From positions 8,804,001 to 8,868,000 of the forward strand of contig OZ059895.1 in assembly GCA_964057225.1 (NCBI GenBank): DNA of 64,000 nt, given 5' to 3'. The DNA is from Auanema rhodensis. Taxonomy: Eukaryota; Animalia; Nematoda. The translations under genes and the position numbers were made by a program. Shown in pieces: positions 8,056 to 59,399 of this stretch. The first letter of the stretch is position 1; each line of letters begins with the position of its first letter. The notes beneath the pieces are model-generated. The model was not told the DNA's origin. It saw only the letters and a list, made by a program, of their open reading frames with translations, and searched no databases.

Positions 8056-8472
8056 GATTGACTAGATTAATCAGATATTAGCCTATTAATGCACTTCTAC
8101 CATTTGAAATTGAAAACTCTGAAATAAAAACTGAAAATAATATTAGAAATATTTAAATGACATTATAAAAATCTTATAAAGCTAGAAAAATATAACCGTT
8201 GTTTTAAAATAAACCACACAAAATGGCGTAAAACAAAAATGGTCCTGCAACGACGACATAAAATTGGACAGCCTCGTTTAAAGCTGGTGTAAGAAGCTAT
8301 TCCAACGTTTGTACTTATATGTATATGTAGCTTTGAAATATAATCTCATAATATTATATTATGAAATATCAAAACACACAATAACATTTCAAATAGTTCT
8401 TAGATTTAGTAACATAAATATATGTACATATCTATTTATATATATATAGTCAACGATTCTTATTAAAGAATC

Positions 8473-9441
8473 ATGCTAACTCCTGCTAATTTGGATCAAG
8501 CTGGAAGCCCATTTCCTCCTCCTCCTGAATATGCACAATTTTATTCATCAGATAGATTAAATGGAACAACGTACCCACCTCCATTACCTCCACCAGCCGT
8601 GCAATCTGAATTCACGGTTTTTGGTGAAGAATATAAACTAAATGACGAAATTATTAGGTTGGAGAAGCTTTATAATAACTTATGATTCATAATTTAAGAT
8701 CGTTGTCTTCTCAAGGAATAAAGCAATTGTATCCAGCTAAATATGACTGGAAAACAGAAATGAAAAAATTAAACAGGTTCGATATCTACAATACTTTTTG
8801 AAGTGTTCGTTTATTTTATTCAGTAGTGCAATGACTGCTTTTTTGGATTTAATTGAATTGTTGATTCGTTGTCCTGACAGTCCTGAGAGAAATGAAAAGC
8901 TTAATGACATTCAAGCAATATTTATCAATATGCACCACCTAATCAATGAGTATCGACCACTGCAGGTATCTATGGTCTCAGTTGTGTTGTGTTTATTTTC
9001 GGTCCTAGGCTCGTGATACATTACGTTTAATGCAAAACATACAGCTTGGAGAATTACAAAATACTGTTACTCGATTCAGGTTTCATTAATGTATTTTTCA
9101 AATACAGGTTTTTTTTTAGAGAACATTTGAAAGCTGGTCGAGAAGCATTACAAGAGGAACTCTCAGTTAAAAATGTTAAGCTTCTTCCTGTGCCTCCTCC
9201 ACTGTCAGGAATTTCTCTAGATTCGGATGATGATAGCGATATGCCTGTTCTGGAAAAAGAAAAGGTATGAAATTACTTTTTTTTCATGTAACTTTCTCAT
9301 ATTGTTTAGAATTATCCAATGGAAGAAGGTGATCACAATAATTCTGTAATGGAACTAATGAAGCGAACGGCAGCTAAGCCTTCTACTCCAAATTTGAGAG
9401 GTCGTCAAAGGATAGATAAATTATTTTTAGACCCGAGTTAA
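8473..9441 (+). CDS. let-49: Mediator subunit MED7
   Basis: SPFPPPPEY, PPPLPPP..FTVFG, SLSSQGIKQLY, ELKKL-like EMKKLN, FINMHHLINEYRPLQARDTLRLM are MED7 signatures. Head-to-head with nrd-1. Confidence 0.93.
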
Positions 9442-10934: not shown

Positions 10935-12335
10935 ATGAGTAGGATTGCAGTCATCGGTGAAGGTGTGATTGGGTTATCAACAGCTCTTGCCATTCAGAAG
11001 CGGTATCCAAATGTTGAAGTTTGTTAGAATTTGTTCTCGAGGGATACTAATGTTTAGCTGACTATTTTTTCTGACGGACCATTCGAAAGCACTTGCAGCT
11101 ATGGACCTGCCGGGCTTTTTAGAGTGGACAATGTAAATTATGAAACAAATCGGTAATTATATTAAACAAGTGTTTGTTACTGACATTTACTCAATAATTT
11201 TATTTCATAGAAAATATGCAGCAGAAACTCATCGTTGGTTTGCTGATTTGTGTAAAAATATTCCAGGATCAGTTACTGGAGTCAAACTTTTATCTGGTCA
11301 CATTCAATCAGATGATAAAAAAAGCTTAGAGATGCAGGTTGTAACTTGAGAAAAAAAAAGAATCCATTTTAAAAGTTAGGAAATAGCTAACAAAGGCTTT
11401 GTTCACAATTTCCGATGGCTCTCAAATCAAGAAATCAACGAACAGTTTGAGAATCCTTCAAAGTATTTCTAAAAATATACAGAAAACAATAATCGCAAAT
11501 CACTTTGAGATATTGTATTCATTTTACCGCTTATGGAGCTGAGGGAGAGAAATATGTTCCGTTTCTACGAAGTCAATTAAACAATATAACATTTATTAAT
11601 AAGAAAGTTGAAAGTATTAATGAGGTGCCTTGTCTTTCTTTCCTGTTTTTTGTTTCATCTGACTTTCTTTTTAGCTTGGAGAACAATATGATATAGTTGT
11701 AAACTGTGCTGGTATAGAAGCAGGTAAATTGGCTGGAGATGATGAGAATATGTTCCCTATTCGAGGGATAGTTCTTGAGGTATAATTAGTTTAAAAAACT
11801 ACAATAATTAAGATTATGGTTTAGGTTAAAGCACCATGGCATAAGCATTTCCTCTACCGAGACTTTGATACCTTTACAATTCCTAAGTAACATGCTTGTT
11901 CTTTATTTATGATTATGTTATACTATTCAAGACAGGATGTGGTAGCGTTAGGATCCGTAAAGCAAACGGGAAATTACTCAAAATCTGTTAAAGAAGAAGA
12001 AATCAAAGAGATCATGAACCGATATTGTCAATTACAACCGGCCATGAAAAACGCTGAAATCTTGAAAGTTTGGTGTCATCTGAGGCCAGCTCGTAATGGA
12101 GGAATACGGTTAGAGAAACTATTGAAGACAACGAGATCGGGAAAGCCATTCACTGTTCGTAAATTTTTTCTTATTTTCACAGTTTGCTGTTATAATATAT
12201 TGTAATAAAGAGAAAAACTTGCAGGTCATACACAACTATGGTCATGGTGGTTCTGGGTTTACACTAGGCTGGGGAAGCGCTCTCGAAGTCGCTAAATTAA
12301 TCGGAAAATCTTCTGCAGAGAGAGCGAAACTATGA
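10935..12335 (+). CDS. D-aspartate oxidase, ddo-1/ddo-2-like, peroxisomal
   Basis: [13 protein letters not shown]-binding motif, [45 protein letters not shown]-terminal -AKL is a PTS1 signal. Confidence 0.92.
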
Positions 12336-13494
12336 AACTAGGTTCATAGTTTATGACTTATTCTATTTCCAAGTTTACACAATCTTGTGACAAGTTATAA
12401 TTCCGTTTACCTAAATAACACTAGTTTGTATAATAGTTTATTATTTGATTTTAATTAATAATTAATAAATATATCTCTGATCTTATTGAAATATTTCAAA
12501 TTAAATGTTTTTCAATAAAGTAATGAATATAGGTAATGATGATTTCACCGATATCAAACTGCTTTATCACACATGAAACTAAGAAAAGAACAATAATAAC
12601 AAAAATTTATTGGAAACATGAAGGTTGGTAAGGCTGGGGTAAAAGGGGTGGGTTTAGAAAACTGAAGATTAGTAGAACGACAAACTGGTTTACACAGACG
12701 TTTAACTGATTTGCCTCTTCCTCTGCAGCTTGTTATTAGCGTATGCGTGGATCCTTGTCGGGTCTGGCATGACAGTGCCATCAGTATTTCTATTATCCAT
12801 TGCAATAGAAGTAAACTTTTACCAAAATGCGTCACTGTTGAGCTATACTTTGAACTATTCTATTTCTTTTGCGTTCAATCTTGTCCAGTTTTATTAGTTT
12901 TCAAATATACTCACTTTTAAATTGAATGTTTTGTATCTAAATAAAGGAATATCCACTATTTGCTATAGAATTTTTTATAACCGAAGCTAGTGAAGAAAAC
13001 TCTACTTCCTCTGGCATTGTCGCGAAGGTCATGCATCTCCCTCTTTCACTACAAAAGCTAGTTTGTAGAGGTGCTGTCTTCATGTTCTCTCCAGGTTCAT
13101 ATAATCAAAACAGTATCGGCTCTATCTAAACATATTCTTTAATTTGTCATATCTGCCTGTGTCACCTCACTTGTATATAATAATTCTTTACCTCACAGAT
13201 ATAAAACCGTCTTAATCTTCTGATATATACCAATTTCGGATACTTTTTGCGAAGTCCAAAACGATACCTATAAAACTGTCGGTTGCGCGCGAAATTTAAA
13301 CTATAAATATAATCAGTTCTCTATAATTTTATGATTAAAGTTGTACTAAGTGGTATTTGAGCATACGTCTATAGCAATTTTGTTATATAATCATATCTTT
13401 ATCTGATCATAAAATCTTTAATTATACGGATTTATACTAAGCATAATAACACCTATTATATTGATAGATTCTGATAATTGGAATAGGGATAGTT

Positions 13495-15089
13495 ATGCGC
13501 CTATTGATATTCTTTCTATGGTTTACGGGTATAACTAATGAACTTTATTAATCTGAATTCCTTTTCTTTTTGAGGCATAGCCGTAGAAGGTAAAATTGCT
13601 ATTATCGGAGAAGGTGTAATTGGTCTCTCAACGGCTTTGGCGATTAAGGAGTTCTCTCCCGAAGCTGATGTATCCTCTTTCGTCTTCGTTTTGGTATTAC
13701 GCACTTATTTACAGATAACAATTTTTCATGATCTTCCATTTGATAAAACTCTTTCAAGGAATATTGCTGGGTTATTTCGTATAGATAATGGCCAATACAA
13801 GTAAGATGACTAACAAAAATTCTAATGTATCATGTTCAGAGAATACGGAAACGCTACTTTTATCCGATTAGCTAAGCTTTGGAGAAATTATGGTGGATTA
13901 TCGGGAGTTCAACTTATATCTGGGCACATACTTTCTCGGAAACATAGTAATCTTGAAACACAGGTTCAAACTCGTCTTCTATTATATTTTTTACTTTCGA
14001 ATTGCTATTAAGAAAGATAATTACGCAGATATAGTTTATAACTTCCGGTACTTGAATGAAAGAGAGCTTCGATCTCAGTTCGAACTTCCCCAGGACGAGT
14101 ATGTATGAGATATTAGTTTTGCTAATTTTCAAGTTTAAGCGAAACTACACAAGCTATTCACTACACTGCATTCACCTCAGAAGGTGCACGTTACTGTCCA
14201 TGGATGAAAAACGAATTAGAGCAACAAGGTGTTCAATTTGTTATGAGATCTATAGCCTCACTAGACGAAGCAAGTTTTTTTCAACGTAAATTTAAAATGT
14301 TGCTAATTAGATCGCTGAAGATGGTTTTGATGTTGTCATTAACTGTGCTGGACTCAACGCTGGTAAATTATCTGGTGACGATTTTAGTGTTTATCCTATT
14401 CGTGGAATATTATTAAAGGTTTAACGTTCTTTTAAAAATAATCATTGTTTTCTTTAGGTTGATGCGCCATGGCAAAAACACTTTTTATACCGTGATTTTG
14501 GTACCTTCACTATCCCTATGTAAGAAATCATGAGCTCTTTTTCTAATACACTCATTATATTTCTTCATTCAGGATCGATTCTGTTGTCGTCGGCACTGTG
14601 AAACAGGAAAATGCCACTAGTGCTTTGTTGTCTGATGAAGAAAAGCATGAAATCTGGAATCGATACATTTCTTTGCAGCCGGCTTTCAAGGTGTCATCAT
14701 CTGAGGCATTTTCGTTATTAAACTTGTTCAGAATGTAAAAGTTCTTGGCACCTATGTCGGTTTTCGACCAGGACGTGAAGCAATTCGTCTTGAAGCCCAA
14801 TTGCGCATTACCAAATCAGGAAAGGTTTACAAGGTACCAAAGAAAATAAAGCGAATAAATGAGACATCGTTTAATTGTCTATATTAAGGCTATCCACAAT
14901 TACGGTCATGGAGGAAATGGGTTCACTTTGGGTTGGGGATGCGGTGAACATGCTGCCAGACTTGCTTTAGAGTTACCAACTGACCAGTAGGCCTTAAGAG
15001 CATGATCTAGTTTTATTTTTACTTTTAGATTTGATAGTGCTTTTAAGCTTAAACACCCTTCCCAAGAGGAAGTGGCTCGTCGACGATAG
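13495..15089 (+). CDS. ddo-3: D-aspartate oxidase, ddo-3-like, with signal peptide
   Basis: MRLLIFFLWFTG leader before KIAIIGEGVIG; [61 protein letters not shown]. No PTS1. Includes a GC-AG intron at 14270. The last intron is inferred; without it the stop is at 14990. Confidence 0.85.
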
Positions 15090-15389: not shown

Positions 15390-18300
15390 TTATATAATAT
15401 TGAAGTGTTGACGGAATTGTTCAGAAAGCACAGGCTCTCCTTGTGTGTTGTCAACTTTTTTAATTCGTATGCATCTTTCCTTCGGTTTTTTTACCAATAA
15501 ACATGTGTCTCCTTCATTTTTAATCATATTTCCTACTTGAGATAGTGCTTCTGCTATGATGCTGAGCAATCTATTCGCAGGACAAACTAAATTCTTATCC
15601 AAATCATTCAAATATTTTTGGAACTCCTAAAAATTTATTTTGTACAAGTAACGGAGAAAGTCCAACCTTTTTTATTTTTCCATCTTTATCCCACTCTTCC
15701 AAATCAATCAAATATTGTTTGACTTCCTAAAAATTTATTTTGTACAAGTAACGGAGAAAGTCAAACCTTTTTTATTTCCAAAGATTTAATCCGCTCTTCC
15801 AAATCATTCAAAGACATTTGGTACACCTAAAATTTTATTTTCTACAAGTAACGGAGAAAGTCAAACCTCTGTTATTATCCCATCTTCATCCCACTCTCCC
15901 AAAAATTTTTGTAACTCCTAAAAATTTATTTTGTACAAGTAACGGAGAAAGTCAAACCTCTTTTCTTTTCCAATCTTTAACCAGCTCTTGAAAAAATTTT
16001 TGTAACTCCTAAAAATTTATTTTGTACAAGTAACCGAGAAAGTCAAACCTCTGTTATTATCCCATTTTTAACCAGCTCTTGCAAAAATTTTTGTAACTCC
16101 TAAAATTTTATTTTGTGCAAGTAACGGAGAAAGTCAAACCTCTGTTATTATCCCATTTTTAACCAGCTCTTGCAAAAATTTTTGTAACTCCTAAAAATTT
16201 ATTTTGTACAAGTAACCGAGAAAGTCAAACCTCTGTTATTATCCCATTTTTAACCAGCTCTTGCAAAAATTTTTGTAACTCCTAAAATTTTATTTTGTGC
16301 AAGTAACGGAGAAAGTCAAACCTCTTTTCTTTTCCCATCTTTAACCAGCTCTTGCAAAAATTTTTGTAACTCCTAAAAATTTATTTTGTACAAGTAACGG
16401 AGAAAGTCAAACCTCTGTTATTATCCCAGCTTCAACCTGCTCTTGCAAAATTTTTTGTAACTCCTAAAAATTTATTTTGTACAAGTAACGGAGAAAGTCA
16501 AACCTCTTTTCTTTTCCCATCTTCATCCCACTCTCCCAAAAATTTTTGTAACTCCTAAAAATTTATTTTGTACAAGTAACCGAGAAAGTCAAACCTCTGT
16601 TATTATCCCATTTTTAACCAGCTCTTGCAAACATTTTTGTAACTCCTAAAATTTTATTTTGTGCAAGTAACGGAGAAAGTCAAACCTCTTTTCTTTTCCC
16701 ATCTTTAACCAGCTCTTGCAAACATTTTTGTAACTCCTAAAATTTTATTTTGTGCAAGTAACGGAGAAAGTCAAACCTCTTTTCTTTTCCCATCTTTAAC
16801 CAGCTCTTGCAAAAATTTTTGTAACTCCTAAAAATTTATTTTGTACAAGTAACGGAGAAAGTCAAACCTCTGTTATTATCCCATCTTCATCCCACTTTCC
16901 CAAAAATTTTTGTAACTCCTAAAAATTTATTTTGTACAAGTAACGGAGAAAGTCAAACCTCTTTTCTTTTCCCATCTTCATCCCACTCTCCCAAAAATTT
17001 TTGTAACTCCTAAAAATTTATTTTGTACAAGTAACAGAGAAAGTCAAACCTCTTTTCTTTTCCCATCTTTAACCAGCTCTTGCAAAAATTTTTGTAACTC
17101 CTAAAAATTTATTTTGTACAAGTAACAGAGAAAGTCAAACCTCTTTTCTTTTCCCATCTTTAACCAGCTCTTGCAAAATTTTTTGTAACTTCTAAAAATT
17201 TATTTTGTACAAGTAACGGAGAAAGTCAAACCTCTTTTCTTTTCCCATCTTCATCCCACTCTCCCAAACATTTTTGTAACTCCTAAAAATTTATTTTGTA
17301 CAAGTAACGGAGAAAGTCAAACCTCTGTTATTATCCCAGCTTCAACCTGCTTTTGCAAAAATTTTTGTAACTCCTAAAAATTTATTTTGTACAAGTAACA
17401 GAGAAAGTCAAACCTCTTTTCTTTTCCCATCTTTAACCAGCTCTTGCAAACATTTTTGTAACTCCTAAAAATTTATTTTGTACAAGTAACAGAGAAAGTC
17501 AAACCTCTGTTATTATCCCAGCTTCAACCTGCTCTTGCAAAATTTTTTGTAACTTCTAAAAATTTATTTTGTACAAGTAACGGAGAAAGTCAAACCTCTG
17601 TTATTATCCCAGCTTCAACCTGCTCTTGCAAAATTTTTTGTAACTTCTAAAAATTTATTTTGTACAAGTAACGGAGAAAGTCAAACCTCTGTTATTATCC
17701 CAGCTTCAACCTGCTCTTGCAAAAATTTTTGTAACTCCTAAAAATCTATTTTGTACAAGTAACGGAGAAAGTCAAACCTCTGTTATTATCCCAGCTTCAA
17801 CCAGCTCTTGCAAACATTTTTGTAACTCCTAAAAATTTATTTTGTACAAGTAACAGAGAAAGTCAAACCTCTTTTCTTTTCCCATTTTTAACCAGCTCTT
17901 GCAAAAATTTTTGTAACTCCTAAAAATTTATTTTGTACAAGTAACAGAGAAAGTCAAACCTCTGTTATTATCCCATTTTTAACCAGCTCTTGCAAAAATT
18001 TTTGTAACTCCTAAATATTTATTTTGTACAAGTAACGGAGAAAGTCAAACCTTTTTTATTTCCAAAGATTTAATCCGCTCTTCCAAATCATTCAAAGACA
18101 TTTGGTACACCTAAAATTTTATTTTCTACAAGTAACAGAGAAAGTCAAACCTCTGTTATTATCCCAGCTTCAACCTGCTCTTGCAAAATTTTTTGTAACT
18201 TCTAAAAATTTATTTTGTACAAGTAACAGAGAAAGTCAAACCTCTGTTATTATCCCATTTTTAACCAGCTCTTGCAAATGATTCAAACACATTTGTTTTA

Positions 18301-20210
18301 GCTAAAAATTTATTTTGTGCAAGTAACGGAGAAAGTCAAACCTCTTTTCTTTTCCCATATTCATCCCTCTCTTCCAAATGATTCAAACACATTTGTTTTA
18401 GCTAAAAATTTATTTTGTACAAGTAACGGAGAAAGTCAAACCTTTTTCATTTTCTCAGATTTAATCCGCTCTCCCAAATCATTCAAATACATTTGGTACA
18501 CCTAAAAATTTATTTTGTAAAAGTAACAGAGAAAGTCAAACCTTTGTTATTATTCCAGTTTCACGCCGTTCTTCGAAATGTTTCAAATATTTTTCTTTCA
18601 CCTAAAAATTTATTTTGTACAAGTAACGGAGAAAGTCAAACCTTTTTTATTTTCTCAAATTTAATCAGCTTTTCCAAATGTTTCAAATAGTTTTCGTACA
18701 CCTAAAAATATATTTTGTACAAGTAACGGAGAAAGTCAAACCTCTGTTATTTTCCCAGTCTTAATCAGCTCTTCCAAATCATTTAAAGACTTTTGGTACA
18801 CCTAAAATTTATTTTGTACAAGTAACAGAGAAAGTCAAACCTCTTTTATTATTCCAGCTTCATCCCGCTGTCCAATCAAAAGTTCTTCACAGCCAACTAG
18901 GTAAGACTGAAGAAACCATTTTTTCAACTTCTTATGTTTTTTTTCAAAATTCGACTCTAATAATGTAGTTTTCAACTCTAAGTATTCACCATCTACAAAC
19001 AAAACAATTATCTATATAATACAAATTAAATTACTTGGCAACAAACAATCCACATCTCCTGCATAAAGAACTTTTATTGTTTTATTACTGGTACATATTG
19101 TTGATCGAACAACAGTGTTGAAATCTTCCCGACAATCAACAGGCACATCCGTATCAGGGACATCCTGAACAGAAAAAATTAAAATAATTCAAAATACGGG
19201 GCTGGTATCGTTTCGTCCACCCCCCCCCCCGGATCTGGGATAGAGCACTCCCGCTGGTTTATGCAAAGCTAATGCGTGCCCAAAATGTTATCTTAGATCA
19301 TGCGTTATTTACTCGAAAATACAGTCTCATTTCTGCGAGTTTAATACTTTTAAATTTTGTTGTTTTGTTGAAGCTCTCTCTATCTGGGGGGGGGATACCC
19401 ACAGAGACCCCCCGGATCTGGGATAGAGCACTCCCGCTAGTTTATGCAAAGCTAGTGTGTGCCCAAAATGTTATAAGCGCGCTCTAATGTTAACTCTCTG
19501 ATTATTAGGGGGGGGGGGATAGGCGAAACAATACCAGCGCCCAAAATACATATTGTTATACATACATGAATACTTTTACGGGAAGTTAGATATTGCTCGA
19601 ATTTAGAGCCATGATATGTCCAAAGCTTATCTTGTGCTGTTTCCTTTTCTTTTCTTAAACGAACATAATTAATTTTCATAAAAATTTATGAGAAACTTTA
19701 TTTTATCCTCAGGAGTTTCTATTTGGCAAATGAATACCAAACCGCGTTTACGAACTGCTAATGCAGTCCATGACTCCTCGGGATGACTAGTCGTACAAAT
19801 ACCAATTTTAGTTAGCATGCCCCGATAACACACAAATTCAGCTTCCAGGAGAGCCTATCAATAAAGATTGTTTCATTCAAACACTTCTTACTACCTTATT
19901 CAAGTTACCACCCGGAGGTGACTGTGTCATTATCCACTTTTCTAAGGTCTCCAAGTATTTCTCTTCGTTCTAATATAAGCTTTCATTTGAATATGATAAA
20001 CGGTTATACCTTTTCCACCCATGCTTTAGAATTTGTATTCAAATCTAGATTTGTTTCTTTATTGATGTTATCAACACAAACATATCTGGCTTGCATGCGA
20101 CCAAGAGTGATTTTTCGATCACTGTCATTGGAGAATTCACCTACTCTTATATATTTGAAAGATCTAAAAGCATGATATTTCCTTTCATAATCGGGAACAG
20201 TAACAGGCAT
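15390..20210 (-). CDS. dom-3: DXO/Dom3Z/Rai1-family decapping exoribonuclease paralogue A, with 34 extra tandem micro-exons (about 950 aa if all are included)
   Basis: FVCYRGMLTKI, YHGSKFEQYLT, LYAGDVDC, EYLELKT, KWFLQSYLVG, GQRDEAG. Then 34 in-frame exons between 18801 and 15667, then terminal exon 15626-15390 (EFQKYLNDL...FRQHFNII*). Confidence 0.85.
15627..18840 (-). repeat. Tandem array of exon+intron cassettes: 35 introns (39-40 nt) and 34 exons (25 of 51 nt, 9 of 60 nt)
   Basis: The constant part reads GTTTGACTTTCTCCGTTACTTGTACAAAATAAATTTTTAG on the minus strand, with exact 91-bp period from 15827 to 18011 and mostly 100-bp units at the ends. All variable parts are multiples of 3 and contain no stop codon. 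Confidence 0.95.
19198..19541. mobile_element. Non-autonomous DNA transposon (MITE), Merlin-like, in an intron of DXO paralogue A
   Basis: Terminal inverted repeats GGGGCTGGTATCGTTTCG / CGAAACAATACCAGCGCC (16/18 match, followed by C/G runs). 8-bp TSD CAAAATAC at 19190-19197 and 19542-19549. Internal direct repeat of about 65 bp. Confidence 0.8.
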
Positions 20211-20632
20211 ATTCGTATATCTAAATGTGCGAAAATAAAGTATATATATATAATATGCAAAGTATGATGTGAGATACACAAAAAAAATTTAAAAAACTAG
20301 TATAATTATATGCCGAAAATTTTATAATGTTAGCCTAGTCTAGCTAACAAAGTATGTATGCAGTTGCATTGAACAAAGATAAGAACACATACCTATAAGC
20401 TGATTAACCAAATTACTATTTATAAATTTTATTCGTTAGTTTATCTCTAAACCTACAATTATACTTTTATATTTTGGCTTATCTGATGAAGAACATCAAA
20501 AGTACGTTTTCTATTTTTAAAATCAAGCTTATCAGCAGGTTTATATGAATTATTTGTTGTTTCATTGTCAATAAATAATTACAATTATTAGTAAAATTCA
20601 TTGTAGAGCGCAGTATCAAATAATTATATAAT

Positions 20633-21011
20633 TATAAATAAAACTTTAAGCTAATCTAGCTTGATAAGTACAAAATTATGAATAAAACTTAAAGCTAATC
20701 TAGCTTGATAAGTACAAAATTATGAATAAAACTTAAAGCTAATCTAGCTTGATAAGTACAAAATTATGAATAAAACTTAAAGCTAATCTAGCTTGATAAG
20801 TACAAAATTATAAATAAAACTTTAAGCTAATCTAGCTTGATAAGTACAAAATTATGAATAAAACTTAAAGCTAATCTAGCTTGATAAGTACAAAATTATG
20901 AATAAAACTTAAAGCTAATCTAGCTTGATAAGTACAAAATTATGAATAAAATTTAAAGTTAATCTAGCTTGATAAGTACAAAATTATGAATAAAACTTAA
21001 AGCTAATCTAG
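20633..21011. repeat. 44-bp minisatellite, about 8.5 copies
   Basis: Unit TAAAACTTAAAGCTAATCTAGCTTGATAAGTACAAAATTATGAA; GCTAATCTAG-like cores at 20650+44n up to 21002. Confidence 0.95.
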
Positions 21012-22457
21012 ATTGAAGTATTGACGGAATTGTTCAGAAAGCACAGGATTTCCTTGTGAGTTGTCAACTTTTTCAATTTCTATATCTCTCTGTTTTTTTA
21101 CCAATAAACATGTGTCTCCTTCATTTTTAATCATATTTCCTACTTGAGATAGTGTATCTGCTATGATGTTGAGCATGCCTTTCGTAGGACAACGTATTTG
21201 GTAACTCAAATCATTCAAATACATTTGGTACACCTAAAAATTTATTTTGTACAAGTAACAGAGAAAGTCAAACCTTTTTTATTATTCCAGCTTCATCCCG
21301 CTGTCCAATCAAAAGTTCTTCACAGCCAACTAGGTAAGATTGAAGAAACCACTTAAAACACTTGTTTCGATGCTTTCGAAAGTCCAATTCTCCTTTTTGA
21401 GTTTTCAACTCTAAGTATTCACCATCTACAAACAAAACAATTATCTATATAATACAAATTAAATTACTTGGCAACAAGCAATCAACTTCTCCTGCATAAA
21501 GAACTTTTATTGTTTTATTACTGGTACATATTGTTGATCGAACAACAGTGTTGAAATCTTCCCGACAATCAACAGGCACATCCGTATCAGGGACATCCTG
21601 AACAGAAAAAATTAAAATAATTCAAAATACGGGGCTGGTATCGTTTCGTCCACCCCACCGGATCTGGGATAGAGCACTCCCGCTAGTTTATGCAAAGCTG
21701 GTGTGTGCCCAAAATGTTATAAGCGCGCTCTAATGTTAACTCTCTGATTATTAGGGGGGGGGGGGATAGGCGAAACAATACCAGCGCCCAAAATACATAT
21801 TGTTATACATACATGAATACTTATAGGGGAAGTTAGATATTGCTCGAATTTAAAGCCATAATATGTCCAAAGCTTATCTTGTGCTGTTTCTTTTTCTTTT
21901 CTTAAACGAACATAATTAATTTTCATAAAAATTTATGAGAAACTTTATTTTATCCTCAGGAGTTTCTATTTGGCAAATGAATACCAAACCGTGTTTACGA
22001 ACTGCTAATGCAGTCCATGACTCATGGGAATATCCAAACCCACAAGTACCAATTTTAGTTAGCATGCCCCGATAACAGACAAATTCAGCTTCCAGGAGAG
22101 CCTATCAATAAAGATTGTTTCATTCAAACACTTCTTACTACCTTATTCAAGTTACCACCCGGAGGTGACTGTGTCATTATCCACTTTTCGAAGGTCTCCA
22201 AGTATTTCTCTTCGTTCTAATATAAGTTTTCATTTGAATATGATAAACGGTTATACCTTTTCCACCCATGTATTAAAATTTGTATTCAAATCTAGATTTG
22301 TTTCTTTATTGACGTTATCAACACAAACATATTTGGCTTCCTTGCGACCAAGAGTGATTTTTCGATCACCGTCATTGGAGAATTCACCTACTCTTATATA
22401 TTTGAAAGATCTAAAATCATGATAATTCCTTGTATCACCGGAAACAATAACAGGCAT
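21003..22457 (-). CDS. dom-3: DXO/Dom3Z/Rai1-family decapping exoribonuclease paralogue B (7 exons, about 344 aa, canonical motifs)
   Basis: FVCYRGMLTKI (motif I Arg), YYGFKFEQY (motif II), GEVDC (motif III), ELKT (motif IV), KWFLQS (motifs V/VI). Lies 363 bp downstream of the mes-3-like gene on the same strand. Confidence 0.92.
21631..21788. mobile_element. Shorter copy of the same MITE in the equivalent intron of DXO paralogue B
   Basis: Same TIRs and CAAAATAC TSD (21623-21630, 21789-21796). Has only one copy of the internal direct repeat. Confidence 0.8.
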
Positions 22458-58820: not shown

Positions 58821-59399
58821 CTAAAAAGCATTTTTTAAATTTGATAGTCCAGGAAGATCCGGCAACTTCATATCCTTTAGTTGTTGAGGAAGATTCATAT
58901 TTTTTACAGCAGACACAGCACGTGCAGGAGCTGCTGATATACCAGCTTCTTGTTTTTGAAGTTTCTCTTGTTCTTGTATTCTCATAAGTATTTCATTCAT
59001 ATTAGTTTCTAGTACCATTCCACCCATGACAATTTCACTGAGAATGTGATGAACCTTATCAACGTGAAATATGAGATCCAATTCGCAAACATTTTCAAAA
59101 CAGCGATCCAAAGTTTCTACAAAAACCTGTATGAGATCTAGTATGCCCAATTCGCTTTCAGAAGAATCAACACAAAATATGAAATAAAGTGTAGCATAGT
59201 GTCGATATATGAGTCGATAATCATTTCCATCTATTAGAGTTCCACCCTCAAGAAAGTTACAAACGTTATCATCCCTCTTAGAAACTAATTGAAATGTTTC
59301 ACGAACGATTTGTTGCTGCATTTCTTCTGAATAATGCTGATAAAATTTAAGCAATCTAGGCTTTCCATGATTATTGATAACCAGAATGGCCTTAATCAT
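58821..59399 (-). CDS. aps-3: AP-3 complex sigma subunit, CDS intronless
   Basis: MIKAILVINNHGKPRLLKFY..IYRHYATLYFIFCVDSSESELGILDLIQVFVETLDRCFENVCELDLIFH..PARAVSAVKN. Confidence 0.97.
   Translation of the reverse strand: MIKAILVINNHGKPRLLKFYQHYSEEMQQQIVRETFQLVSKRDDNVCNFLEGGTLIDGNDYRLIYRHYATLYFIFCVDSSESELGILDLIQVFVETLDRCFENVCELDLIFHVDKVHHILSEIVMGGMVLETNMNEILMRIQEQEKLQKQEAGISAAPARAVSAVKNMNLPQQLKDMKLPDLPGLSNLKNAF

Follow-up and report, generated by a model that had tools for sequence, protein, structure and literature searches.

A tandem array of 34 putative in-frame mini-exons and 35 near-identical intron-like units inside a DXO/DOM-3 paralogue of the nematode Auanema rhodensis

In a stretch of 64,000 nucleotides (nt) from the nematode Auanema rhodensis (assembly GCA_964057225.1, contig OZ059895.1, positions 8,804,001 to 8,868,000 of the forward strand), which we call the window and number from its first letter, we have identified two tandem DXO/DOM-3 paralogues, both on the minus strand. 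One of them, gene A, carries between its last two core exons an apparent satellite that parses as 35 intron-like units alternating with 34 in-frame blocks; its neighbour, gene B, is free of the array (coordinates are collected in Table 1). We propose, with a probability of about 0.6, that the gene A array is spliced intron by intron and translated, the blocks acting as mini-exons that would together encode a 605-residue repeat domain.

Tandem Repeats Finder describes the array as 32.6 copies of a 91-nt period (score 3903, positions 15826–18855), and a regular-expression parse of the minus strand resolves it into exactly 35 intron-like units, 34 of them 40 nt long and one 39 nt. All 35 start with GT and end with AG, the start reading GTTTGA and the end TTTTTAG or a near variant, and donor and acceptor are complete in every unit, with an exon end of the form AG/GT and a T-rich tract before the final AG. 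The 40-mer consensus, searched with up to 3 mismatches (≤3), has 36 matches within the window, 35 in the array and one at 21234–21273 in gene B, where 100 shuffles lead us to expect 0. The array introns separate 34 blocks, of which nine measure 60 nt and 25 measure 51 nt; every block is of phase 0–0, and none contains a stop in the frame that runs from exon 18992–18841 into exon 15626–15390, as against 25 and 28 stops in the other two frames of the 51-nt blocks. Inclusion of every block adds 25 × 17 + 9 × 20 = 605 amino acids (aa), and the spliced model of gene A encodes 951 aa when all 34 blocks are included but 346 aa when the array is left out, a single terminal stop closing the model in either case. 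Retention of an array intron brings in a stop at the second codon for 34 of the 35, the exception being the last intron (a GTTGGA variant). A first-pass annotation of this DNA had described a 40-nt repeat part of GT...TTTAG type forming 35 introns and 34 exons, variable parts of 51 or 60 nt in phase 0 and free of stops, a full insert of 605 aa, and identity of the repeat with the last intron of the neighbouring paralogue; the parse bears out every countable detail of this description, and the example peptides given there are found in the translation of the array.

Two other roles for the repeat were considered and rejected. A functional RNA within the conserved 40-mer is not supported, as a search of Rfam over the whole window returned one transfer RNA only and array units were found to fold without structure: 2.4 units are less stable than their shuffles (z = +1.7), which leaves no stable structure to hinder splicing. 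Coding on the plus strand was set aside as well, the open reading frames there being merely 57–65 aa long and bounded by stops.

The copy number of 35 introns and 34 mini-exons is as given by the assembly. Arrays with a 91-nt period are hard to assemble from short reads, and it is conceivable that the number or order of the copies is wrong or that the array is misplaced. Against this, the units are not clones of one another, since 13 intron variants and 24 distinct mini-exons (among 34) succeed each other in non-periodic order, the two length classes being laid out with old units at the edges and young ones in the centre; both ends of the array join the flanking exons in frame; and its 3.2 kilobases (kb) lie well within single long reads. 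We therefore regard an assembly artefact as very improbable.

Both gene models were built by hand from GT..AG introns of 40, 40, 43, 215/401, 42 and 40 nt. The Pfam profile RAI1 (PF08652) matches single exons of each gene, at 39.2 bits for gene A (18841–18990) and 42.8 bits for the penultimate exon of gene B (cut-off 26.8), and weaker exon matches follow in the correct order at profile positions 6–47, 83–120 and 165–194. With phmmer, the penultimate exon of gene B aligns to residues 236–283 of the 352 in Schizosaccharomyces pombe Rai1 and to residues 245–294 of the 378 in mouse DXO (4j7l), and these alignments take in ELK and GxRD. The catalytic motifs of the family are GhxhE, EhD, EhK and GxRD; gene B has them as GFKFE, EVD, ELK and GQRD, and gene A as GSKFE, DVD (in GDVDC), ELK and GQRD. 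Genes A and B thus match the RAI1 profile as do the decapping 5′–3′ exonucleases DXO, Rai1 and Caenorhabditis elegans DOM-3, and both carry GxKFE, (E/D)VD, ELK and GQRD in the family order. On this homology both are DXO/DOM-3 genes, in agreement with the earlier naming of gene A as a DXO decapping nuclease. Gene A differs in that its domain is interrupted after GxRD by up to 605 aa of lineage-specific repeats. Solved members of the family are 349–417 aa long, and a contiguous domain of ∼350–420 aa fits gene B (344 aa) and array-skipped gene A, but not the 951-aa product. We know of no DXO-family member with a large internal repeat insertion such as a spliced and translated array would give gene A, and searches of the literature on dom-3/DXO in nematodes and on nematode tandem exon duplication, which did not extend to a survey of the family, yielded none with this architecture.

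The composition of the blocks points to their source. Each 20-aa block reads as a fusion of nine residues from the start of the last exon (VYQMYLNDL in the case of gene B) with eleven from the end of the penultimate one (GQRDEAGIIKK). A single founding tandem duplication of 100 nt accounts for this: it took in the final 33 nt of the penultimate exon, the whole of the 40-nt last intron, and the initial 27 nt of the last exon, and its junction created a chimeric exon between two intact introns, in frame and 20 aa long because 33 + 27 = 60. Gene A itself derives from the recent duplication in tandem of a nematode dom-3 (DXO/Rai1) gene. Unequal crossing-over would then have expanded the unit, and a 9-nt deletion would have produced the 17-aa variant found today in 25 of the 34 copies. 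This 51-nt class is without codons 7–9 and is nearest to 60-nt unit 6; its members combine a small set of N-terminal, middle and C-terminal modules into mosaics and occupy the middle of the array, whose two edges hold 60-nt units that are older and more diverged. Local higher-order patterns (alternating intron variants in units 28–31, identical neighbouring units 13–14) show that unequal exchange is still continuing. Concerted evolution, by gene conversion or unequal exchange, would keep the introns near-identical, the exons being free, or selected, to differ in protein sequence.

In gene B, the 40-nt unit can be counted as a proven intron on coding grounds, because an in-frame stop follows at the second codon if it is retained. 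The other introns of genes A and B measure 40, 40, 43 and 42 nt, and the published medians for intron length are 47 nt for A. rhodensis and 41 nt for Oscheius tipulae (PMC6469403). Since every 40-nt unit has its donor and acceptor complete and is of the length usual for introns of this gene, the gene A array is expected to be spliced unit by unit. Sequential removal of the introns would likewise be expected because the sites are identical, the nearest acceptor stands 40 nt from its donor, and the RNA is unstructured. The main product would be the 951-aa protein, its repeat domain inserted ∼78 residues before the C-terminus and just after the GxRD motif, and any exon skipping would stay in frame.

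This last property invites the proposal that the array is a combinatorial cassette system, in which variable skipping produces a ladder of in-frame isoforms and serves as a generator of functional diversity. Skipping products would escape nonsense-mediated decay, all blocks being of phase 0–0, and the mini-exons are both diverse (24 distinct among 34) and mosaic (53 of 105 column pairs in the 51-nt class fail the four-gamete test). Exon symmetry is, however, automatic from the founding duplication and so is no evidence of design; the splice sites are near-identical, offering no difference able to regulate a choice; and the array shows neither a selector nor any docking or competing RNA structures (fold z = +1.7). 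The features that direct exon choice in Dscam-like mutually exclusive clusters, namely rival RNA structures or splice signals that differ from exon to exon, were looked for in the array and not found. We consider a dedicated diversity generator improbable, and constitutive removal of each intron seems at least as likely as alternative use of the cassettes.

If translated, the 605-aa insert would have 41% charged residues and would be rich in E (18%), K (16%), L (14%) and Q (10%). Its repeat unit has hydrophobic positions 2, 5, 6, 9 and 10, followed by N/D-G and then by IITE or KRKE, which suggests that each repeat may run from an amphipathic helix through an N/D-G turn into a short strand or KRK segment. 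Searched against Pfam, a spliced stretch of 71 aa was assigned to no family, the only matches being short and weak ones of helix-turn-strand (winged-helix-like) type that arise from the repeated motif.

We used the pattern of sequence change as the test of exon versus intron identity. Of the 40 intron columns, 32 have a minor-allele fraction of 0, and the fraction rises with the first base of the exon. In the 60-nt class, 37 of 60 exon columns are variable, whereas the introns beside them vary at 8 of 40 columns (Fisher p = 4e-5). Nucleotide diversity (pi) in this class is 0.254 for the blocks and 0.050 for the introns, and its silent diversity (pS) is ∼0.2; in the 51-nt class, the corresponding pi values are 0.119 and 0.037. 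The mini-exons are therefore 3–5 times more diverse than the array introns, which resemble one another more closely than neutrality would predict. The non-coding minisatellite of 44 nt found beside gene B provides a comparator, and its pi of 0.028 is like that of the introns and unlike that of the blocks. Of the 17 variable columns in the 51-nt class, 16 are first or second codon positions (P = 0.0096). Its 18 events are replacements without exception, and pN/pS is ∼11 in this frame as compared to <0.7 in shifted frames. A fairer test is the unified count, in which each derived allele is counted once over all 34 aligned blocks, because variation in the 51-nt class has been reshuffled among units, as its four-gamete failures indicate. 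That count gives 52 events, namely 46 replacement changes, 6 silent changes and 0 stops, where neutral change of the consensus predicts 3.0–3.5 stops (P of none = 0.03–0.04) and 9.5–12 silent changes (P = 0.015–0.09). Changes in block length are all multiples of 3, and the sole length variant among the introns differs by one base. The support for coding constraint is moderate, at P ∼0.01–0.04 per test.

Taken together, these data say that selection has probably distinguished the two parts of the repeat exactly at the splice sites, keeping the frame open and leaving the amino acids unconserved. The pattern fits an array that is spliced and translated under concerted evolution without amino-acid constraint, and possibly with positive selection on the blocks; as far as base changes can tell, it does not fit a neutral satellite or an intronic repeat that is never included. 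The treatment of the blocks as exons in the first-pass annotation is thereby supported, by the switch in variability at GT and AG, the lack of stops, and the excess of replacements.

A simpler account would have the array as an intronic minisatellite, with the donor at 18840 normally joined to the acceptor at 15627, so that 3.2 kb is removed whole, gene A makes an ordinary DXO of 346 aa, and translation of the blocks is rare or absent. That open reading frame is intact and collinear with gene B, the locus is prone to minisatellites (the 44-nt array stands at the gene B stop codon), and an insertion of this size would break up a compact catalytic fold. Whole-array removal nonetheless leaves unexplained why variability switches exactly at the GT and AG boundaries, why 605 codons are free of stops (P ∼0.03) when the other frames have dozens, and why silent changes are too few. 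Moreover, nematode splicing works by intron definition, and with introns of ∼40 nt, an acceptor 40 nt away should beat one 3.2 kb away. We judge it unlikely that the array is normally removed as a single intron.

Comparison of the two paralogues bears on whether gene A is maintained. There is 1 difference in the 165 positions of introns 1–3 and 5, there are 2 in the 214 positions of intron 4 that can be aligned, and 1 lies in the 190 nt upstream, whereas the exons differ at 102 of 1035 positions (9.9%), with a silent divergence (pS) of 0.074 and a replacement divergence (pN) of 0.106 (silent versus non-coding divergence, Fisher p = 1e-6); dN/dS between A and B is ∼1.4. Introns that are closer than silent sites are the classical signature that gene conversion opposed by selection on exon differences would leave, and both paralogues would therefore be functional. 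The differences are patchy, concentrated in codons 226–241 of exon 6 and the first third of exon 7, and the first 75 codons hold 13 replacement and 0 silent differences; this pattern suggests either that conversion acted together with selection, or that the donor in the conversion was intron-less or diverged. A genome-wide mechanism, such as RNA-templated (complementary DNA) conversion, may also lie behind the combination of identical introns and diverged exons.

Gene A could instead be a decaying duplicate, with the array a neutral satellite that is in frame by chance, and the open frame and replacement bias due to chance or left over from the founding unit. Its altered catalytic motifs (GDVDC, GSKFE), the A/B dN/dS, and the P values of ∼0.01–0.05 behind constraint within the array are all compatible with decay. 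Yet all 7 core exons remain open despite the 102 differences and an in-frame 6-nt indel relative to gene B, ELK, GQRD and GxKFE are kept, and all 41 splice-site pairs are intact at ∼10% exon divergence; indels are all in frame. A neutral satellite would not give a fivefold gap in diversity between parts of one repeat unit, and the divergence of <1% in introns and 5′ flank as compared to 7.4% at silent sites (p = 1e-6) points to conversion and selection acting on both genes. Decay of gene A thus appears to us to have little probability.

Several observations weigh against a spliced and translated array. In gene A, the family motif EhD has undergone an E to D change, and GFKFE an F to S change, and a phmmer search with its last exon against 1.84 billion representative proteins gave 0 matches. 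Much of the diversity in the 51-nt class is older 60-nt variation reshuffled, so that its 18 of 18 replacements are not independent new events; omega in the unified count is only ∼1.5–2, and the no-stop test stands at P ∼0.03. The preservation of frame by block length goes back to just two independent events, one being the founding duplication and the other the 9-nt deletion. The hexamer AATAAA occurs within 33 of the 35 array introns and could bring about premature 3′ end formation. Exons as short as 51 nt, with a spliceosome assembling on either side, approach the length that leads to skipping in other systems. Finally, a 605-aa insert within the PD-(D/E)XK fold may stop the last 78 residues from repacking, and the full-length 951-aa product may not be an active DXO.

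Iterated, homogenized introns that delimit repeat-encoding exons have been described in the spider silk genes Flag and Argiope MaSp2, where they are ascribed to unequal crossing-over and gene conversion and where the MaSp2 introns of Argiope have an average identity of 97.6% within the gene (PMC9779670). Like these genes, the gene A array has tandem exon-plus-intron units in which near-identical introns bound a protein repeat, and by this analogy the evolutionary process is one already known from spider silk. The silk exons, however, are also strongly homogenized and encode a structural fibre, whereas in gene A the exons are 3–5 times more diverse than the introns, the unit is only 91–100 nt, and the host is the catalytic domain of an enzyme rather than a repeat protein. 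Tandem exon-duplication arrays also include the human LPA kringle IV-2 repeats and the 54-bp collagen exons, which share with gene A the in-frame expansion of a unit by unequal recombination and the expectation of copy-number variation; their units are kilobases long or pre-existing domains, whereas the gene A exon is new and made from parts of two neighbours. In the primate L/M opsin genes, conversion and selection have left introns more alike than exons. The same persistence of exon differences alongside homogenized non-coding sequence is seen in our case at two levels, in the comparison of gene A with gene B and inside the array, although the opsins involve two genes and a few tuning sites and gene A involves 35 units and a whole repeat domain. 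What is unusual here is the compactness of 91–100 nt, the greater diversity of exons than introns, the making of an exon from two half-exons, and the site within a DXO catalytic domain.

Table 1. Positions of the two paralogues, the array and associated repeats in the window
Feature	Position	Strand	Details
Gene A, DXO/DOM-3 paralogue with array	15390–20210	−	Core exons 20210–20010, 19969–19895, 19854–19697, 19653–19566, 19164–19035, 18992–18841, 15626–15390
Gene A penultimate core exon	18841–18992	−	ELK, KW..Q and GQRD motifs; last 33 nt (GQRDEAGIIKE) part of the founding duplication
Gene A terminal exon	15390–15626	−	78 aa and stop; first 27 nt (EFQKYLNDL) homologous to the start of every mini-exon
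Array, 35 40-nt putative introns alternating with 34 in-frame putative mini-exons	15627–18840	−	Regular-expression parse, Tandem Repeats Finder, consensus search
Older, diverged 60-nt (20-aa) mini-exons 1–6 with introns	18242–18801	−	37/60 columns variable, 8/40 in flanking introns
51-nt mini-exon number 7 (25th of its class)	18151–18201	−	
Remaining 60-nt mini-exons	18051–18110, 15767–15826, 15667–15726	−	
51-nt (17-aa) mini-exons, numbers 9–32 (24 of 25)	15867–18010	−	17 variable columns
MITE-like insertion (miniature inverted-repeat transposable element), gene A intron 4	19198–19541	−	33-nt terminal inverted repeats (85% complementary), long G/C homopolymer runs, internal 183-nt duplication
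44-nt tandem array, 8.8 copies, non-coding minisatellite comparator	20630–21016	−	Tandem Repeats Finder; 96% matches; pi 0.028, intron-like, unlike blocks
Gene B, array-free DXO paralogue	21003–22457	−	344 aa; exons 22457–22257, 22216–22142, 22101–21944, 21900–21813, 21597–21468, 21425–21274, 21233–21003
Gene B last intron	21234–21273	−	Identical to the ‘T’ variant of the array intron, which occurs 9 times
Shorter copy of the MITE-like element, gene B intron 4	∼21640–21800		

The 44-nt minisatellite begins inside the last codons of gene B, which ends in FNLD before its stop codon where gene A ends in FNII; beyond the repeat, the sequence resumes with an A-like ‘ATTATATAA’ end, and the minisatellite therefore appears to have replaced the original stop region of gene B. 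Just downstream of gene A and convergent with it, open reading frame translations read by eye show apparently two tandem D-amino-acid-oxidase-like genes on the plus strand (11140–15000), and a MED7-like gene apparently at ∼8470–9270. The window has a guanine-cytosine content of 30.8%, the values for A. rhodensis and Auanema melissensis being 32.2% and 37.1%. Its 44.3–60.5 kb portion is collinear with A. melissensis contig CALQYR020007291.1 (GCA_943334845.2; PMC9984802) at 65–85% nucleotide identity, with a common gene order of TMEM230, homeobox, zinc-finger, AP-3 sigma and rpl-17. The single-exon AP-3 sigma gene (58824–59399) encodes a protein 100% identical to that of A. melissensis, at 82.6% identity in nucleotides.

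If the array is spliced and translated, it would offer a clean and datable birth of a protein domain, in which a 100-nt duplication across an intron gave a symmetric exon that was then amplified 34-fold within the catalytic domain of an enzyme. It would also provide a natural test bed for the behaviour of the spliceosome on 35 identical minimal introns and 51-nt exons, with respect to intron definition, order of removal and frequency of skipping, and a system for studying how concerted evolution homogenizes introns while the exons between them diverge. One far-reaching scenario, which we offer as speculation with long odds against it, is that of a young paralogue of a cap-quality-control nuclease bearing a fast-evolving, recombining 34-unit repeat domain that selection keeps open and diversified; the identical 40-nt introns would serve as modules for recombination and splicing, stochastic in-frame skipping would give each animal a range of DXO variants that differ in length and sequence, and the domain would possibly be a recognition or scaffolding module in an arms race over RNA surveillance. 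For the biology of RNA decay, a spliced and translated array would raise the question of whether paralogue A keeps its nuclease activity or is becoming something else.

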